Below are positions 41,801-53,800 of a stretch of DNA of 64,000 nt, in pieces (the first letter of the stretch is position 1; each line of letters begins with the position of its first letter). The translations under genes and the position numbers were made by a program. The notes below the pieces were generated by a model. That model saw nothing but the letters and a program-made list of their open reading frames with translations. It had not been told where the DNA came from and did no database searches. Origin of the DNA: Oikopleura dioica (lineage: Eukaryota > Animalia > Chordata). The DNA is taken from contig OU015567.1 of the NCBI GenBank assembly GCA_907165135.1, positions 4,836,001 through 4,900,000 of the forward strand. Reading direction: 5' to 3'.

Positions 41801-44800
41801 TTTTCCAGCGAGGACTTCGCATGTTCCGTCGTTGAAACAGGGGTTCAAGTCGCAAGGGCTCTGGTCGCAGAACTCTCCGGAATACTCGTTTATGCATTCA
41901 CAACTGACGGAGTTTTCGGAGATCGGAGTACAGAGACCGTTTTGGCCACAGGGGCCTGCGTTGCATGGCGAAATTTCGCACCTGTTTTCCTCTCCATGAG
42001 TGATTCCTGGAGGACAAAGGCACTGAGCAACGCGATCAGCATCGATAAAACAAGTTCCATCATTTTGGCAGTAATTTTCAAAAAGGTCACAGACGGTCTT
42101 TTCACAGAAATCTCCGAGAAAGCCTTCGCTGCAAGTGCAAATCTGCTCATTCAAGTTGTTTTTCGAACAGATTCCTCCATTCTCGCAAGGGTCGTTTGCA
42201 CAAAGATCAATTTCACAGCGACTACCGTGGAAATTCCCAATGCATTTGCAACCAGGCTCTCCATTTTCATCAACAAAGCACTCGCCATTTTCGCCATTAC
42301 AGTCAAAAGACTCGCATACAGTTATCTCACAGTAGCTGCCAGTAAAGCCGGGAGGACAGAAGCAAGATGTATCGCTAAGAGTCTCAGTCGCTTTGAAATG
42401 AAAGTTTTTGATGTTTCCAGAAGCCGGCGATTTCGACTCAGAGACGGTTTTGACGGAAAAGTTTTGGTAGAAAATCTTGTTTCCGGGAAGTTTTACTGTG
42501 TGTCTGAGGTATTCCTTTCCATCGATCGTCACTAGAATCTGATCTGATCTGGCGATGATGTCGAATTTCGTCCCTCCGGTCTTTTCAAAACTTATTTTGG
42601 ATTGCAAAATTGAGCCAGAACCGCGCTCACACTTCAAAATCGTACAGAGCCAAAAGTCAACCGAGTCCGGGTCTTCTGAAATCGTCAGCAGCGATCCAGA
42701 TGCTTCACTTACAAAATCTTCTTTATCCAGAACTTCGATTCTTCTTCCATCAAAAACGACTTCCAAAATGAATTTTTGATCCTGAGGAAGTTCAAAGCTT
42801 TTATAAACGAAGCTCATTTTCCAATCAAGTGTCAGTTCGGAAATTGTCAAAATCTCCTTGCCCATTTCAATGTCGATCGATTCCCTTTTCAAGTCGCCAA
42901 TGAGTTCGCATTTTCCATTGACGCAATTATTGCCCTCGTCCGAGTCGCAAGGGGTTACTTCGCAGACTTCTCCGGAATACCCATCTGCGCAGTCGCAAAA
43001 ATACTCGCTTTCGATTCCATCGCCAGACCCTTCACCTTCTTTTTTGCATTTTCCTCGTTGATTGCACCCTTCAAGCAGCGAATCACAAGGGGTAATATGA
43101 CACAGTGCTCCGGAAAAGCCCTCGTTGCAGTCACACTCGAATCCGTTAACAAGCGGCACGCAGGTTCCATCATCACCGCATGGATCGTCCGAGCAATGAT
43201 TTTCCTCGCAGCGTGAGCCGAAATAGCCATCTGGGCACTCGCAATATCCAATCAAGCCAAAAACCAAGCAAAATCCGCCGTTTTCGCATTGGATATCAGT
43301 ACAAGCGTCGTAAACACAGTCGGGTCCATGGAAACCCGGTGCACATTCGCACTCGTAAAATTGCGGTGGTTCAAAAAGCTGGTCGTCTTCCAAGAGAGCC
43401 GGGTTGGTTTCATTTCTCGCCACGACATGGCAGGTCCCGCCATTTTGGCATTTGTTATCGGAACAAGGAGTAAACTCGCAGAACTGTCCGTAAAAGCCCT
43501 CTTGACAAATGCAAGTTGGAAATCCGCCCTGAATCGAGCAAACTCCATCGTTGAAGCAGCTGTATTGTATTGTCTCTTCAGTATTGCAAGGAGTTACTTC
43601 ACAGTGCTCGCCTGAAACTTCAAAAAGCCCAGAACAATCGCATTGATAACCAGGCGCTTGAGGAATTTGAACGCATTCTGCTCCATTTAGACATGGATTT
43701 TCGTCGCAAGGGTTGATCTCGCAGAATTCTCCGAGCCAGCCAATGCAGGAGCATTCGTATCCCTTCTCAAAATCACTCGATAGGGAGCAGAATCCATCGT
43801 TCAAACATGCATGTTCGTCACAAGGAGTAACTTCGCATCTTTCCCCGGAATATCCATCTTTACATTCGCACTTAAAATCGTCTCCGTTTCCAATACACTT
43901 TCCTTCGTACAAGCATGGGTCTTCGCTGCACACCCCTTCGAGGCAGTACCTGCCGCTGAAGCCCTCGGGACAGTCGCAGTAAAAGTCCTGATCGATGATG
44001 GAACAAGTGCCGTTATTCTGACAAGGAGAATTTTCACACGGAGTTGTTTGGCAAATATCACCAGAAAAGCCATCCGGACAGCTGCAAGTAAAACCTGTAC
44101 TGTCTGCAGTACAAGTAGCTTTATACAGACATGGATAAGTCGAGCAAGAATCGAACTGGCACTTTTCACCGTAGAAGCCGATTTCGCATTGGCAGGTGTA
44201 GCCTGTTTGATGAGGAAAGCAAGTTGATCCATTTTCGCATTCGTTTCCTTGGCAGGAATCGATTTGGCAAAACTTACCAGAATAACCAGTTGGGCATCGG
44301 CACTCGAATTCATCAGCACTGGTTGGATCGCAAAGACCATTGTTGATGCACGGATTCGGGTGGCAAATGTCTAATTGGCAGAACTCCCCATTGAAACCGT
44401 CTTTGCAAGAGCAAGAAACACGCAAATCATTTGTCAGCGAACAAGTTCCGCCATTGACGCATGGATTTTCTTCACAAGGAGAGACTTCGCATTTTTCCCC
44501 TCCAAAGCCTTCTGGGCAGAGACAGACGTACGAATCGACCCCGGGGACGCATTTGTCACTGGAAACGTAGAAACAGGGGTTGTCAGAGCAAGTGGTTAGT
44601 TCGCAGTTGTTTCCGAAAAAACCAGCTTGGCAGGTGCAGCTGGCTTCTCCTTCTTCGATTGAACAATGGCCTCCGTTTAGGCAGATCTGAGAGTCGCAGA
44701 CGGAGTTTTGGCAGAAAGAGCCGGAGAAACCAGGATCGCAGATGCACGAAGTTTGGCTTTGGTTTTCTTCTTTAAATGATTTCTTTTGTATAATATAAAA

Positions 44801-47800
44801 TATTTGAATCGTTAATTGACATCAGAAGATAAATGAGTTCGTTTTTATTGCAGGCTTAACGTTTTCGGAACAGAAATTCCATCATCAGAGCCGGTTGCTT
44901 GAAAACTTGACGATCTTTTTTACAAGGGAGAAACTGACCTTTTCTTGTTGAAGAGTGAACTGATCAAAATTGCGAATAATAATTTGATCCCTAACCATAT
45001 TCTAGAGAAAATTCTTTAACCCAAACTGTTTTTATAATCTCAGAGGCTCCAATTGCCTTCAAAACTTATAAAAACAGTTTGGGTTAAAGAATTTTCTCTA
45101 GAATATGGTTAGGGATCAAATTATTATTCGCAATTTTGATCAGTTCACTCTTCAACAAGAAAAGGTCAGTTTCTCCCTTGTAAAAAAGATCGTCAAGTTT
45201 TCAAGCAACCGGCTCTGATGATGGAATTTCTGTTCCGAAAACGTTAAGCCTGCAATAAAAACGAACTCATTTATCTTCTGATGTCAATTAACGATTCAAA
45301 TAATGGCTACCGACATCGAATCAAGCGCTTGGAAAACTTGGCATCAAAAATGCACAGGTCCAGGGAGCACAGAATTTCTTATCGAACTGTGTTTCTGATC
45401 AATTATTGCCTAATTTTACTAAGGTACCAGCCTCAGTTTTAAAATTTTGTAAATGGGGTAGGAATAAAATTCGTAGGGAACGGGAAAAAATTTTAGTAAG
45501 GGAACTTGAAAATTGTAATAAAAAATTAGAAGAAATTAGGGTATTATTTAATGAACATCTGTTAAAGTTTTTCGATGAAGAAAAAATTAAATCGGAAAAA
45601 GAAAGAATGAAATTTATTATAGATTTAGAAAATAAAGCTAGAATAAAAGATGAAGATCGAGATAACAAGAGACAAATTAAATTTGGGAAACTCAAAGCCA
45701 AACAACAATTTAATAAACCAAAAAATTTTTAGTAAAAATTTATCCAGTAAACAAATTCCAAATAATATTCAGAAAATTCTAGAAAGAGGTTACAAGGCCC
45801 CTGTAGGGGGAAGGCCTCATGAATTAAATTTATTACAACAATTTGACAGTTTACTTGGACATCTTCAACGGTATGACAAATTTCAGTCTCTTTCACCGAT
45901 ATCTAAATTTCATCTTAAGGGAAAACTTACTGTTATGCATGAAAAACTCACTTGTTGTTTTGGGGGAGATGACAGTAATAAAGTAATACGACAATTTTTA
46001 AGGGATAATTCAGATATTGTTTTTGTTCTTGGTGACAAAGATTCTGTAATCGTTATTCTAGAAAGAGACAGATACGAAAATGCTCTTTTAGCAGAATTTA
46101 AGGATACAAATAAATTTATTGAGGTGCCACTAGATCCGGTTGAGGAAGATACTATAGAAATGCGGAAAAACTTAAGATCACTCGAAAAATATGTCGACAA
46201 GAAATTTTATAATTTGAATAAACCTATTTCTAATATAAAAGTAGCTTATGGTTTAGCCAAATATCACAAACCATCGTTTGAGCAAGAATTATATATGAGG
46301 CCTATTATTTCGGCAAAAAATACAGTAAGCGAAAATTTTCAGAAAAATTTTCTTGGAAAATTACTTGATAACTTGAAGTGCGATTTTACTCTTCAAGGAT
46401 CAAAACAATTTAGCGACTGGTTTAAAGACAAAAATTTTGATTACTCACAAATTGATTATGCAAGTTTTGATATTGAAAAAATGTACCCTTCAGTAAATAC
46501 TTCGCATTTAATTGAGTTATTAATCAAATTTATTTATGAGGAAAATTCACCGTCAAAAATTTTGCCAAGATTTAGAAATGAGGAAAAAAAATTATTGAAA
46601 CCAATTCCAAAAACTGTTCTTTGGCCTATCTTAGTTTCTGTGCTCACTCGTTTGACCTCTTTCCGTTGTTTTGACAAGTATTATAAGCAAATTTCGGGTC
46701 TAAGTATGGGTGACAGTATTAGCCCTAAATTGGCAAATTTTTATCTACATGTACTCGAAAAAGACAAAATCAAAAAATTGATTAATGAAAAAATCATTTT
46801 CGGTTATCGGCGCTATCTCGATGATACCATCGTATTCTTCAAACGTGGTTGTTTCGACGAAGTCAATAATATTTTTCAAAGTCTTCATGAAAGTCTGAAA
46901 ATTACAGTCGAAAGATCTTGTCCAAGTGGTATAAAATTCCTTGATTTTATAATTTATCCTTCAGAATCAAATATCCTTCAAATACGCAACAATCGTAAAC
47001 ACACAGTTCCGATGAATTTCGTAAAAGATACTGCTCCGGTCTCTCTGAAAAAGGGAATTCTTATATCAGAAATCAAAAGGTCATTCTACAAGCATTCTTG
47101 TCAGAAAACTCTTGACGAGGAGTTAAAAGAGATAGAACAGAAATATCTCTCTCAAGAATTTCCCCTAGAAATTATACGTGATGCAGTAAGAGTAGTTAAA
47201 GAGGGTAAAACGGATAAAAAAGACTGGAAACTGGAAAAGTCTGAAAATCCAGAGAGAAATTTTACAATCTGTATTCCTTTCACGAGTCAGAGGGTGTCCC
47301 GAATAACCAGCGAGTTGCGCAGGTTGATATCCGTATTTTTACCAGAATTTAATTTGCACACGGCATTGTCTACTGTAACGATGCGTAACACGATTATCTC
47401 CAGTCTACTGCCGAAGACGGAATTCGAAAAGGCCATTAATGTGGTGTATTCGTTTAAATGTCGGTGCGGCGAAGAGTATATTGGAGAGTCGGAATCCCTG
47501 AGCATGAGAATCCGAGATCATGGACAACCATCAAAAGATACAGCTATATTTTCTCATACAAAAGAGTGTGATGATTTTAAGACAGGGTTCATTGAGAAAT
47601 ATCAGCAAAATAATCCTCAATCTCGATTTGACTATCTTAGCTCACATTTATCGATATTACATAAAAATCTTCCTTATGACAAGAGAAAACAAGTTGAGGG
47701 TCTTGAAATCGTGCTTAAAGATCCGCAGTTAAACAAACAGATCAACCATCGAAAAATCTTCATTTTGTGATACCACTCAGAGGCAAGTTTTGAAGGCAAT

Positions 47801-50800
47801 TGGAGCCTCTGAGATTATAAAAACAGTTTGGGTTAAAGAATTTTCTCTAGAATATGGTTAGGGATCAAATTATTATTCGCAATTTTGATCAGTTCACTCT
47901 TCAACAAGAAAAGGTCAGTTTCTCCCTTGTAAAAAAGATCGTCAAGTTTTCAAGCAACCGGCTCTGATGATGGAATTTCTGTTCCGAAAACGTTAAGCCT
48001 GCAATAAAAACGAACTCAATATAAAATATATATAAAATATATATTCTGGCAAAAAGGAACAAATTTTTTTGTGCGATTTTTTAAATCTATCGTTCATTTA
48101 TCATGATCAAAAATTCCTGTTCTCCCAATTTTATACACCATTATGGTTTTTAGAAGCAAATGTTAAAAATACAAGAAACCATTCCTGTTTTCTGCTGAAC
48201 AACACAAGTCTGATCCAAATGACACGGATTTCTAGTGCAGGGATCATTTTCGCATCGCGCCCCGTAAAAACCCTCTTCGCAGTCGCAAATGAACCCAGTT
48301 ACACTTTTCGCCTCCAACAGACACTCTCCATCATTCAAACAAGGAGAGTCGTTACAAGGGCTGTTTTCGCACAAATCTCCAGTGACGAATGGGTTTTGAC
48401 AGGAGCAGACAAAATGAACGCCTTTTGGGACACATTCGCCGTCATTTTCGCAGGGCTGGGTTGAACAGGCCTGGTCTTTTTCGGATATTTCAAGAAATAA
48501 TATAATATAATATAATATAATATAATATAATATAATATAATATAATATAATATAATATAATATAATATAATATAATATAATATAATATAATATAAAGTTG
48601 ATGTATCCGTGCGTATGTGGCAGTTATCCCCTTCAAATCCACTGGCACAATGGCATTTTGCTGCTAAATTCTCCGAGTCAAAAACGCAAATTCCCCCATT
48701 TTCGCAGCTCTTCCCCAAGCAAGGGTCAATTTCACAAAACAACCCTTTTAGATCTTCTGGGCAGTCGCAATAGGTGTCTGTTCCATCAACTTTGCAAGTT
48801 CCGTACTTGCAGGGCGAGTCGTGGCAGGGATCGATATCGCAGTAATCACCGCTATAGTTTGGCAAGCAATCGCAGGTGTAAGAGCTTCCGGAGATAAGAC
48901 ATTGAGAACCATTCCGGCAATTATTCTTTGAACAAGGAGTAATCTCGCAATTTTCTCCGGTGTAGCCATCTTTTTTTGGGATGAAAAAGATCGATTTTTA
49001 AGCCATAAAATATCATTTACAATTCATGCACTTTTGTTAATTAAGGCCTTCATCAACTACTGTCTAAGACAGGCTGTTATTCATGAATTATTCAAAGCGA
49101 TATATTTTCTTTGGAAAGTTTTTTGACCAGAAACCTGTTTCGAGAAATATGCGACTTTCTTATTTGATTTTTCTTTTGTTTGGAATTCAGGGAAAATTCA
49201 TCTTTGGAGGTTTTTACGACGCCATTTGCGCCAGAAGTGGTAAGAAAGAGAATAAAAAAAAATGATTTTTTCGATTATTTTTAGATTACAGAAGAGCGTA
49301 TCCAGAAGATTGCCAGCGAAGAAAAAATGGCTTTGGCTGGCGGATTCAATAAACTTGACAAAATTGACAAATAAACTTGACAAAGCCACTCTTCATGAAT
49401 TATTTTCAGAACTTCTTATTTGAAAGGCCGCATGTTTTCGACTAAGAGCCTTCTTCTTAGCGAGAACGATGAGATTTTTCTACGTTTTTTTACTGTTTGG
49501 AATTCAAGGAAAATTCATATTTGAGCGTTTTTACGATGCAATTTGCGCGCGACAAGGTCTGAAAAAATTATTTTCCGACTTAATTTATTTTCTTTCTTCA
49601 GATTACAGAATTGCTTATCCGGAAGATTGCCAGTCCGGAGCAAACAAATTCTCCTGGCAAATTCACTACAAATGACTAATGAAATGGGGCTTATTCTGAA
49701 TTGACTTTTCTGAGACTCTTCTTTCTATAGTTTTTATATTTTTCTTGAATTAAATTCGTATTCGCCGCAAATAAACTAGATTTCTTCCATTAGAATCAAA
49801 AATTCATGCAAACTTCTTCGCAATAAATCTCAAAAGACAGCCCTAACGACTCATTATCGTATAAATAATTATCATCGGAGCATAAAAAGAAACCATCAAC
49901 ATTTAACAGAGTCAGTAAAAAAACGTCCTAAAGTTCAAATGAAAATCTTACTTCCTTTTTTCTTTTCAGCGATTTCGGGAAAATTCGCCTTTGGGGGCTT
50001 TTACTATGCTATTTGCAATAAAGAAGGTATTAAAAATATTTCAAGAGAATAAATAATCGGAAAATTAAGATTACCGACAAGCCTATCCAGAGGATTGCCA
50101 GCGAATGAAAGGAAATCCAAATGAATGGAAAATTCTTTAAATTTCTCTGATTTTTAATAAATTCTTCGTTTTCATCCCTTTCCTGGGCAATGACACTTGT
50201 ACTCTCCTCCTTCCAGATCTTCGCACTCTCCTTCATTCAGACATGGGTCAAGATCGCAAAGAGTATTCTGGCAGTAAATTCCCACAGTTCCAGGTCGACA
50301 GTAGCACTGCGGCAGGTTATCTTCGTTGATTCCACAGACACCCAAGTTGGCGCAGGTCAACAGTCCCGTGTCGCAAGGGGAGTTCTCGCAGTTTGGCCCG
50401 GAAAAACCAGGCTTGCAGGAGCAGATGTATCCTCCCTGAATGACAGTACAACTGCCACCATTCTCACAAGGCGAGCTAGAGCAAGCATCGATCTCGCAAT
50501 GAATTCCCGAAAATCCATCATCACACTGGCATTTATACGAATTATCTTCCATAATATAACATTTCCCAGATGTCCCGCAAGGATTCAAGTGGCAAACTGT
50601 CTCCTCACAAAAATCCCCTATATAGGGAGGGTCACAGCTGCATCGAGGGGCGCCGCCGTCCATGATGCATGTTTGCCCATTGCAAGGATTCAAGGCGCTG
50701 TCGCAGGGAGAGCGCTCACATACGACGCCGGAATAGTTGTTGATGCAGGAGCAGTTAAATCCGCCGGTGGGAATGTTGTTTTCGTCCATGTCTTTTCAAA

Positions 50801-53800
50801 GGCCTATGAATTATGGTGAGAAAGACCGATATTATTGAAAAAGGGCCTTTCCTAAAGAACAGCTTCCGCCATTCTGACATGGATAATCTGAGCAAGGTGT
50901 TATTTCGCAAAGTTCACCGTTATAATTCTCCGCGCAACGGCACTCGAATCCATTTTCTCTCTCCTCATTATGGACGCACATAACCGCTCCAACTTCGCAA
51001 GGCTCGTCAAAGCAGGCATCTTGCTCGCAACGCTTTCCTGAGTAGAACCCGGGGCAGTCACAATCTGCGGTTCCAAATGTATCATTGTTTGAGCATGTTC
51101 CTCCATTAAAACAGGGAAAGCGCTCGCAAGGAGAAGTCTGGCAAAACGGTCCAAAGTAGCCAGGATCGCACAAGCACTCGGTATAATAGCTTTCTTCAGT
51201 AAGAACGAAGTTGCATTTGCCTTTGGAATTACACATATCATCTCCGATGGAATCGCAAGGGGTTACTTCGCAGTTCTTTCCATCAAAATCTCTCGGGCAC
51301 CCGCATCTATAATCATCTTCGAGTTCAATACAAGGCGCTCCGTATAAACATGGTTGTTCCAAACAAGGATTCGGAGTCAACGGAACACTGGGTACGAAGA
51401 AATCATTGAGAATTCGGACAGGGGCTGGGGCGAAATGGGATGTTGCCATGATCGCGATTGTCCCGACATTTGCGTCGAACTGCACTCGATCCCTTTCTTC
51501 TCCCTCAACTTCAACGATCAGGAAAAGCTGTTGACCGACAAACTTTGTTTTCAGAGTAAATCTCGTCGAGTAATCCGAGCTTATCGTGTATTTTGTCCCA
51601 AGGCATTGAGAAGCAGTGCAAATTTGAATCGATCCATCACTGCCTGTCTGCCAGACTGAGAACATGGTGCTTACGTAACTTGGGATGGAAACGATGTCGA
51701 TAATGTTGGCGGTTTCGCTGAGAGGAGCTGAGTCTTGTCTCAGGTCAAAACTCATTTCCCATGTTTGCTGGACGCTATCTACTCGCTGAAGCTGCTGATT
51801 TTGGGCAACCAAGATTCCTGGTGTTTCGGGAGGCGGAGGACCATCGATGGTATAAAGCTTCAAATGCCTTATCAGCCCGTCAAAAGGTCTGTAGCCACTT
51901 CGAGTCGAATAAATTTTTGCCCCTTCCAAGGTCGTTACGATCGTCTCACTTGTTCTATCAACTTCAATGTGATTTACGAAAATTATACCAATCGATTCTC
52001 CCTGCGAGTTTATGGTCTGTCTGTAGCGATAATTGACTGAATTCTCAGCTGGGATTGCTGCTTGACGGCATTCATTGATATAACAAGTGACGAAGCTTTC
52101 TTCTAGAGTTTCGGTATCCCAGCTTTTCCAGACTGAAAGTAAAAATGCTCCGTCTTGTCCTGTTATTTCCACGAAATTGACCCAAGAAGTAGGTAGCCCA
52201 CCTCCCTTATTCATTTGAAAAGACAATTCCCATTCGCTAGTAAGTGTCAGTCCGGAGGGCTCTAGTGGTGTCTCTGATGGAACTGGCTGGTGTTCAGGTA
52301 AGTCGAAAATAAGCGTCCTATTACTTTCGTCTTCATCGTCGCTTTGGAATTCAGAGTCGCCATTGTCATCGGCTCTCGCATCCCAGTTGAAATCGTTGAT
52401 CACGAGTGCTGGTGCTTTCGTCGGCGGAGGCGCCGTTTTTTCAGCCAGAAACGTTGCAAAATCAACCTCCTTCGCATCATACTCATAATCGTACTCCTCG
52501 TACTCTTCTTCCTCCACTCTAAAATTCGATTGAGCCAGCTCCTCATCTTCGCTCAAAATTTCATTCAAGAAAGAAGCCGGGTTTTCTTCAGCCACAAAAG
52601 TGTCATCAACAAGATTCATGAACTCGTTGCTCTCGCTGATCATCGAGAACTGATCCTCTGGCATGTCAAAAGATCTCACAAAAAGCGTCGCTCGAGTGTT
52701 TTTCTCGGGAATTTCAGACTCTTCGGATTCTTCGTACTCCAAGTCGTATTCTCGTTCTTCGGAGTATTCGAGGATTTCAGAGGGCTGGAAATCATAGAGG
52801 AAAATTTCAGAAGCCTCGGATTTTTCTGGGAAGGTATCGTGAAGAAGATAGGGATTTGTAGAGTCAGTAGAGTCAAAGAGAAGGTTTTCAGCGACTTCTT
52901 CTTCGCTTGCCATTTGAGCTGCTCTCTTTTTCGCCTCCATCATCGTCGAAAAAGCATAAATCGAAAACGCAAGTTTCTCAAAATCCCCAAATTGCAGATC
53001 GTACAGCGCTCCGAAGGTTTTATAGAGCAATCGATGAACTGACCGCATGCTTGTTATTTTAGTTACGAAAGGAAATTGAATGATGCTTTGGCAGAGAAGG
53101 TTGGTCTTCGCTTGGTTTTCTTTTTCGAGGAAGATGATCACCATTACTTTGAAGATTTCAGCGTCGGAGATTAATAATTGGTCGTAGCAATAATTATCAG
53201 CCTCTGTAAAACTGGGCTAGGCAAAGCTATGTAGAAAACCTGAGTCAGGGACCCTGAGTCAGGGTTCTGAAAAAGCTTTAATTAAAGTGGCGAGGTTTTT
53301 CAATCAAGCTTTATCAGGTCATGAGTCAGGACCCTGACTCAGGATTCTGACAAATCTGACTTCTGTGTAGAAAACCTGACTCAGGGTTCTGACAAAGCTA
53401 AAATAAAAAGCCTAATAGCTTTTCAATCAAGCTCTTTTAGGTCCTGAGTCAGAAATCTGAGTCAGGATTTCTGACTCAGGTTTTGATAACAGTTTTTCCG
53501 GACCCTGACTCAGGTTGTCAACACAGGTTGCCGAGCCCAGCTTTAAAAGCGACGATATCTGAAGACACTTCTCTTTGTAATGCAATCATCGAAGCAAAGT
53601 ATCTCGAAAAAGTAATGTCATCCGCCGTTTGACCAGAAAAGCTGCCCAGAATTGTGGATAGAAAACGCATCAGTTGGTCAAAATCGAGATCGGCATTCAT
53701 TCGCGAGTAAATGGAAGTGAAAATGAGCATAGTTGAAAACTCCGGATGCTCGGTCATTGGGGCGATTCTTGGGTCCTTGAGGAAAATTGCTCGGATTTTG

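Follow-up and report, generated by a model that had tools for sequence, protein, structure and literature searches.

A probable family of small secreted-peptide genes nested antisense in an intron of an EGF-repeat gene of Oikopleura dioica

Three small predicted genes, here called g1, g2 and g3, lie in tandem on the plus strand of a 64-kb stretch of the Oikopleura dioica genome (contig OU015567.1 of assembly GCA_907165135.1, positions 4,836,001 to 4,900,000; hereafter the window, in whose numbering all positions are given). They sit inside a single intron of a very large minus-strand gene encoding epidermal growth factor (EGF) repeats, the host gene, which has Pfam EGF matches down to E = 9e-91. 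We consider it likely that g1, g2 and g3 are genuine coding genes, belonging to a hitherto undescribed, lineage-restricted family of small secreted peptides, and that one copy has been nested antisense in the host since before the window's lineage split from the relatives described below. The family is probably restricted to larvaceans. A preliminary description of the window had proposed an unannotated secreted-peptide gene family, nested antisense and under purifying selection, and this proposal is supported by orthologues, by ratios of nonsynonymous to synonymous substitution rates (dN/dS), by the pattern of insertions and deletions (indels) and by the lack of a match to any known family.

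All the elements described for the three genes were present: tandem plus-strand units of two exons, each with a signal-like segment, a phase-1 GT-AG intron and a shared motif (Table 1). Splicing would give products of 52, 53 and 52 amino acids (aa) from g1, g2 and g3, respectively, and the same Asp codon is split by the intron in each. A degenerate DNA pattern, consisting of two motifs and a gap for the intron, matched the 64 kb exactly three times, at g1, g2 and g3, with 0.00 matches expected from 100 shuffles, and tblastn with the exon peptides found no fourth copy within the window. The exons of the paralogues are 62-77% identical (z = 4-10 over shuffles), whereas their introns, 100-nt 5' flanks and 60-nt 3' flanks are at shuffle level or near it (z -2.0 to 2.7), in agreement with the earlier observation that motif, frame and splice sites are conserved while introns and intergenic DNA have diverged. 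When the window was searched for repeats, only the two exon blocks were recovered as three-copy families. A mobile-element origin was rejected, as the gene units have no flanking repeats and only the exons repeat. The g2 gene has one peculiarity. Because its intron is in frame and contains no stop codon, the unspliced open reading frame (ORF) at 49469-49675 reads through and appears in the ORF list as a 68-aa product, with 15 intron-coded residues placed inside the loop between the two cysteines.

The family was also found in relatives, with same-intron orthologues in two diverged ones. The g2 read-through ORF was used as a HMMER query against 1.84 billion representatives, and a profile search was run afterwards. 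HMMER matched P0001 (66 aa) at E = 3e-6 and the profile search added P0006; these two proteins are unspliced ORF calls on metagenome contigs, namely L001 (JGI) and L002 (ENA), the latter being the same as L003 (Logan). Both L001 and L002 carry one plus-strand peptide gene, antisense within the same phase-1 host intron as the window's. In both, the host exons flanking this intron are 63% identical to those of the window on either side and collinear with them up to the intron boundaries, and the intron measures 371-374 nt, against 1207 nt in the window. The peptide gene of the relatives has an ATG, a 91-nt exon 1, a 68-nt exon 2 and a GT..AG phase-1 intron at the same position, 42 nt long in L001 and 40 nt in L002, compared with 45, 45 and 43 nt in g1, g2 and g3. 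Read without splicing, L002 changes frame, and this accounts for the unusual C-terminus of P0006, while g1 and g3 meet stop codons; unspliced L001 and g2 keep the frame but acquire 14-15 unconserved residues. Once spliced, the five products can be aligned over their full length. Such a pattern across the five genes reads as the mark of a spliced coding gene and not of a conserved non-coding block. The taxon of L001 is represented by five contigs (L001 and L004-L007) from five samples, all of them intact, and the only exon changes in L004-L007 are one synonymous substitution and one K-to-Q replacement. Two DNA-pattern scans of a separate metagenome-contig collection, one with a pattern matching the window and L001 and the other with a pattern that fits all four known copies by eye, gave 0 matches; the L001-L003 contigs are not part of that collection. 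The duplications cannot be dated, because the distance from g3 to g1 equals that from the orthologues to g1, synonymous divergence (dS) is saturated and a tree of five taxa is unrooted.

Purifying selection, claimed in the preliminary description, was seen in dN/dS values of 0.09-0.36, in a frame-specific synonymous excess and in exons free of indels beside indel-rich non-coding DNA. Between L001 and L002, dN/dS was 0.19 over the whole coding sequence and 0.09 in the mature part (Sd 7, Nd 3; S 23, N 88), and the comparisons among paralogues gave 0.18-0.36 with dS > 1. The signal region evolves faster (dN/dS 0.4-0.8), yet it remains hydrophobic. The 19 differences between L001 and L002 are distributed 5/2/12 over the three codon positions, and when all six frames are compared, an open frame with a synonymous excess is seen for the proposed one alone (binomial p = 0.002 for this pair). 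The proportion of synonymous differences exceeded that of nonsynonymous differences (pS > pN) in 10 of 10 pairs, with Fisher p from 9e-9 to 5e-3. No indel separates L001 from L002 in 159 exon bases, in contrast to 8 gap columns in the intron (42/40 nt), 6 in the 5' flank and 11 in the 3' flank.

The five precursors share an N-terminal hydrophobic segment of 14-15 aa, with Ile at position -3 in all and G/G/G/A/A at -1. By heuristic criteria this segment is signal-like (maximum 8-residue Kyte-Doolittle score 2.0-3.2), and an invariant Lys-Phe follows directly after it. The mature part is 37-39 aa long (4.5-4.8 kDa), has 21-23% aromatic residues and contains exactly two Cys, 12 residues apart in all five peptides. 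Its 18 invariant columns make up KF.F..FY.AIC...DYR..YPEDC and, later, one Asn and one Trp. Net charge is +4 for g1, +1 for g2, g3 and L001, and +3 for L002. No mono- or dibasic cleavage site is conserved across the five peptides (RR/RRK occurs in g1 only, RR elsewhere in L001 and L002), and none of them ends in a Gly available for amidation. These features suggest that the peptides are secreted and that the Cys pair may close a single disulfide loop, and the invariant mature positions look like a small folded binding module. Our best guess, of low certainty, is that the peptide acts as an extracellular ligand or as a matrix- or house-associated binding peptide, in preference to a membrane-active antimicrobial.

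The data are consistent with the following course of events. One copy would have been present, antisense, in this intron of the EGF-repeat gene before the lineage of the window split from the two sampled relatives, and the window now holds three tandem copies. Each gene would be transcribed from the plus strand, TATA-like sequence, shared upstream motifs and AATAAA signals being present, and its 40-45-nt intron would be spliced out, as judged from comparative sequence rather than RNA. The resulting 52-53-aa precursor would enter the secretory pathway and lose its 14-15-aa signal by cleavage after Gly or Ala, the two invariant Cys would close one disulfide loop, and the 37-39-aa peptide would probably leave in one piece, because neither a dibasic site nor a C-terminal Gly is conserved. 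The nesting itself probably has no mechanism of its own.

Candidate cis signals differ between the copies. The g3 gene has TATAAA at 49860-49865, 79 nt 5' of its ATG, and AATAAA at 50156-50161, with 15 nt between it and the host exon. In g1, an AATAAA at 49348-49353 overlaps the stop codon and a second one is found at 49370-49375. The nearest canonical AATAAA of g2 is at 49770-49775, and no TATA lies nearby. ACTATAAAAG is conserved in the relatives ~36 nt 5' of the ATG. Besides the two copies of TTCATGAATTATT listed in Table 1, the related sequence AATTCATGCA occurs upstream of two of the genes, ~126 nt from the ATG in g1 and ~138 nt in g3, and is a further candidate for a shared cis-element. 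Within 49348-49384, the 15-nt sequence AATAAACTTGACAAA is present as a perfect direct repeat, in two copies 22 nt apart, the first overlapping the g1 stop, and the g1 poly(A) signal is duplicated because this repeat occurs twice.

The genes g1-g3 (49149-50140) lie wholly within the host intron, the bounds of which were set by the homology of both flanking exons. The preliminary description had placed the intron at ~48976-50175; its view that the intron holds the genes stands, and the exact ends had to be corrected to 48970-50176 from the orthologous exons. The minus-strand donor of this intron is GA in the window and GT in L001 and L002, where the intron is of the GT-AG type; GA-AG introns are numerous in O. 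dioica (PMC7072748). The host sequence that can be compared in the relatives amounts to ~1,850 aa, with 718 aa on the upstream side of the peptide-bearing intron and 1127 aa on the downstream side, and that intron is its sole interruption. The host gene of the window has at least two further introns downstream, at ~48483-48595 and ~44792-48152, both without a counterpart in the relatives, and the 1127-aa host exon of L004 is unbroken across their positions. Loss of the gene-bearing intron would delete the nested gene, which may be why this intron is the only one shared; the nested gene would thereby shield its intron from loss. No evidence for regulatory coupling of the peptide genes with the host was found in this analysis. 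As a separate observation, the ends of the host intron form an inverted repeat (48978-48997 versus 50159-50178, 16/20 complementary); with intron bases only, the score is 15/20, a value equalled by ~0.6% of shuffles and of interior pairs.

No known family had been recognised from the sequence, and none was recognised by our searches. Neither P0001 nor the g2 ORF matched any Pfam family, the best E-value in the PDB profile search was 0.43, the best score in the ESM Atlas was 0.71, which is no match, Rfam had nothing near the gathering score, and a literature search with the motif strings found no occurrence. In the homologous-protein search, the g2 read-through ORF gave no candidate and the host exon no match at 1e-20. 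Four other proteins matched weakly by HMMER were judged to be chance. P0002 and P0005 contain bacterial Kazal-like repeats, and their alignment leans on the intron-coded residues of g2; it was discounted because these residues would be spliced out and are not conserved in the other copies. Moreover, a Kazal-type inhibitor needs six Cys in three disulfides and the mature peptide has only two Cys. P0003 derives from three 105-nt tandem repeats in a Tara Oceans contig (L008, 400-894; 164-aa ORF), the ORF of which resembles the end of g2 exon 1 followed by the translation of the g2 intron. P0004 is a giant protein without YPEDC and Cys, and its match also leans on the intron-coded residues of g2. 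Members of the opioid/nociceptin family carry Y/F-GGF at a free N-terminus that is released by dibasic cleavage. An identity of this kind, suggested by FGGF, was rejected: the motif is internal (mature residues 4-7, after KF-x), reads FERF in g2 and has no cleavage site before it. A neuropeptide or hormone precursor was set aside for want of a conserved basic cleavage site or C-terminal Gly, and a cationic single-disulfide antimicrobial in view of charges of +1 to +4 and an acidic/aromatic invariant core.

Several observations weigh against g1-g3 being functional genes. Two oligo-dT RNA-seq runs and one single-cell run, all with the same species label, were mapped to 48850-50300 at an identity of at least 90%, and 0 reads fell on the nested genes; because the host exons also received 0 reads, this result is no test of expression. 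O. dioica comprises deeply diverged cryptic lineages, and the RNA runs may derive from another of them. No spliced or unspliced product of g1-g3 was present in a 5.8-billion-cluster protein collection. In DNA contigs of another individual, X27, sequenced in the study that is also the likely source of the window, one g1 allele (depth 6.1, compared with 7.6 for a reference-like allele) has 1-nt deletions at 49159 and 49206 and a Phe-to-Val change at a conserved site, and stops after five codons. In the single X27 contig that covers g2 (depth 13.7, otherwise identical to the window), the T7 run at 49485 is shortened to T6 and the ATG thereby loses its frame; the ATG at 49432, further upstream, would then be in frame, although the signal sequence it gives is poor. 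X27 has no contig over the g3 stretch, 49922-50168, a gap that suggests either a haplotype under 90% alike there or an artefact of filtering; its full-depth contigs end at 49921 and resume at 50169, with no joint reported. The preliminary description had named a dN/dS near 1 together with frame-breaking alleles as the signs that would speak against the genes: such alleles were found, for g1 and g2 in X27, whereas a dN/dS near 1 was not. At least some copies are thus dispensable or decaying in the lineage or population of the window.

Decay of this sort would be expected if the nested gene had a function in the ancestor and retains it in the relatives, but the window's copies have become redundant relics, turning into pseudogenes and little or not expressed. 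The broken alleles of X27 (heterozygous for g1, the only allele seen for g2, with g3 uncovered), the zero reads from three RNA runs and the lack of a TATA or canonical poly(A) signal near g2 are in line with this idea. We nevertheless regard it as unlikely, since the three reference copies retain ATG, splice sites, frame, both Cys and the full motif despite a paralogue dS > 1, and have survived long after duplication with dN/dS of 0.18-0.36. The zero RNA reads are no test of it, since the host exons received none either, and null alleles commonly segregate in multi-copy clusters of secreted-peptide genes without the locus being dead. The fact that this cluster is tandem, with presence/absence and null alleles, can equally be taken as a trait of host-defence peptides of the single-disulfide hairpin kind that target microbial membranes; small size, a signal peptide, one disulfide, abundant aromatic residues and the charges of g1 (+4) and L002 (+3) point the same way. 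This antimicrobial function, which the preliminary description had offered among others, proved a poor fit and seems quite improbable to us: net charge is only +1 in three of the five peptides (g2, g3 and L001), the invariant core (DYR..YPEDC) is acidic and aromatic and not cationic amphipathic, the mature part is under strong purifying selection (0.09) where such peptides usually diversify, and neither Pfam nor PDB gave a match.

That the blocks are not coding at all, and instead serve the host pre-mRNA as regulatory or splicing elements within its intron or make up the exons of a non-coding antisense RNA, we hold to be very improbable indeed. Their position inside a host intron and the failure to see a transcript or peptide would suit such elements. 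They would not account for the 5/2/12 codon-position pattern, for a synonymous excess (p = 0.002) in one plus-strand frame and none in the other five, or for the retention of ATG, stop, GT..AG and frame in five genes whose introns vary in length by non-multiples of three, and Rfam contains nothing like them. At the other extreme, the peptide and its EGF-repeat host could form an ancient functional module, in which the nested gene is the reason why the intron survived in lineages where all neighbouring introns were lost or replaced, antisense transcription is coupled to that of the host (for example, in the house-building epithelium) and the peptide serves as a ligand or accessory of the matrix protein. 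To so far-reaching a scheme we assign little probability; if true, it would mean that a conserved larvacean-specific signalling or matrix factor has been overlooked by every annotation. We thus favour the interpretation of g1-g3 as coding genes of a secreted-peptide family whose nesting predates the split.

Like the intron-nested pairs of Drosophila, mammals and compact genomes, the arrangement consists of a complete small opposite-strand unit in a single intron of a larger gene. Nested genes tend to be short, and many are young duplicates (PMC5174743); the listed features of compact genomes such as that of O. dioica include intron-nested genes (CORAL preprint). Unlike typical nested pairs, the nesting here appears old, being common to relatives with a host protein only 63% identical, the nested gene has multiplied to three copies within the intron, and it sits in the only host intron that is shared. 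It offers a clean example of a nested gene marking the only intron shared between diverged lineages, and suggests that nested genes can freeze host introns in place. The clade is known for massive intron turnover.

A second comparison is with the oikosins, the proteins of the larvacean house. Of 80 oikosins, 44% resemble no known protein; families of paralogues are common among them, and some contain EGF repeats (PMC3390340). The predicted peptides are like oikosins in being secreted and in having no detectable relatives outside the lineage, and the host gene encodes EGF repeats as some oikosins do. The defining marks of an oikosin are its presence in the house proteome and its expression in the oikoplastic epithelium, whereas the peptides described here are predicted from sequence. 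No sequence relation between the peptides and oikosins was found, and peptides of 4.5 kDa would probably be missed by a gel-plus-trypsin workflow.

Single-disulfide bioactive peptides include hormones of the somatostatin/urotensin type and defence peptides of the arenicin, thanatin and bactenecin types. The present peptides resemble them in having a predicted signal, a short mature part rich in aromatic residues and a sole pair of Cys able to close a loop. They differ in the 12-residue loop with its acidic YPED core, in the lack of conserved dibasic or amidation sites and in being weakly basic, and no sequence similarity to such peptides was detected in Pfam or PDB. The peptide family is new, but O. 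dioica is already known for both intron-nested genes and orphan secreted proteins. With it, a model chordate gains a secreted-peptide family that is conserved, under selection and so far unannotated. Such small genes are easily missed because a 40-45-nt intron divides their ORF and the whole unit lies antisense within a host intron; the case is relevant to annotation pipelines and peptide discovery, and reveals no new kind of mechanism.

Table 1. Positions of the nested genes, the flanking host sequences and candidate upstream elements in the window.
Feature	Position	Strand	Description
g1 exon 1	49149-49239	+	ATG, 15-aa signal-like region and first 15 mature residues; ends at base 1 of the split Asp codon
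g1 intron	49240-49284	+	45 nt, GT..AG, stop codons inside
g1 exon 2	49285-49352	+	DYR..YPEDC.. plus tail; stop TAA
g2 exon 1	49469-49556	+	14-aa signal-like region, then start of mature part; T7 run at 49485-49491
g2 intron	49557-49601	+	45 nt, GT..AG, stop-free and in frame
g2 exon 2	49602-49675	+	stop TGA
g3 exon 1	49939-50026	+	TATAAA 79 nt before the ATG
g3 intron	50027-50069	+	43 nt, GT..AG, stop codons inside
g3 exon 2	50070-50140	+	stop TAA
Host intron	48970-50176	-	1207 nt, phase 1, GA-AG by homology; contains g1, g2 and g3
Host EGF-repeat exon ending at the intron donor	50177-50789	-	Pfam EGF E = 7e-24; 63% identity to L002 host
Host EGF-repeat exon from the intron acceptor	48599-48969	-	63% identity to L001 host
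TTCATGAATTATT (8-bp palindrome TTCATGAA)	49080-49092	+	69 nt before g1 ATG; candidate cis-element
TTCATGAATTATT, second copy	49392-49404	+	77 nt before g2 ATG; candidate cis-element

Some minor features of the locus may be added. A perfect 14-nt inverted repeat (49482-49495 / 49913-49926) has one arm on the polymorphic T7 run in the signal codons of g2 and the other 13-26 nt upstream of the start of g3; it may be due to chance. In the host gene, an in-frame stop at 50790-50834 on the minus strand divides the ORFs 50172-50789 and 50832-53144, and the host protein of L005 aligns straight through; this segment is probably a small in-frame intron of the window's host that is missing from L005. The downstream intron at ~48483-48595 contains a short tandem repeat, which appears as LYYII... 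in the ORF list. The longer one, at ~44792-48152, contains a plus-strand ORF of 706 aa (45650-47770) with a weak match to reverse transcriptase (RVT_1, E = 5e-5).

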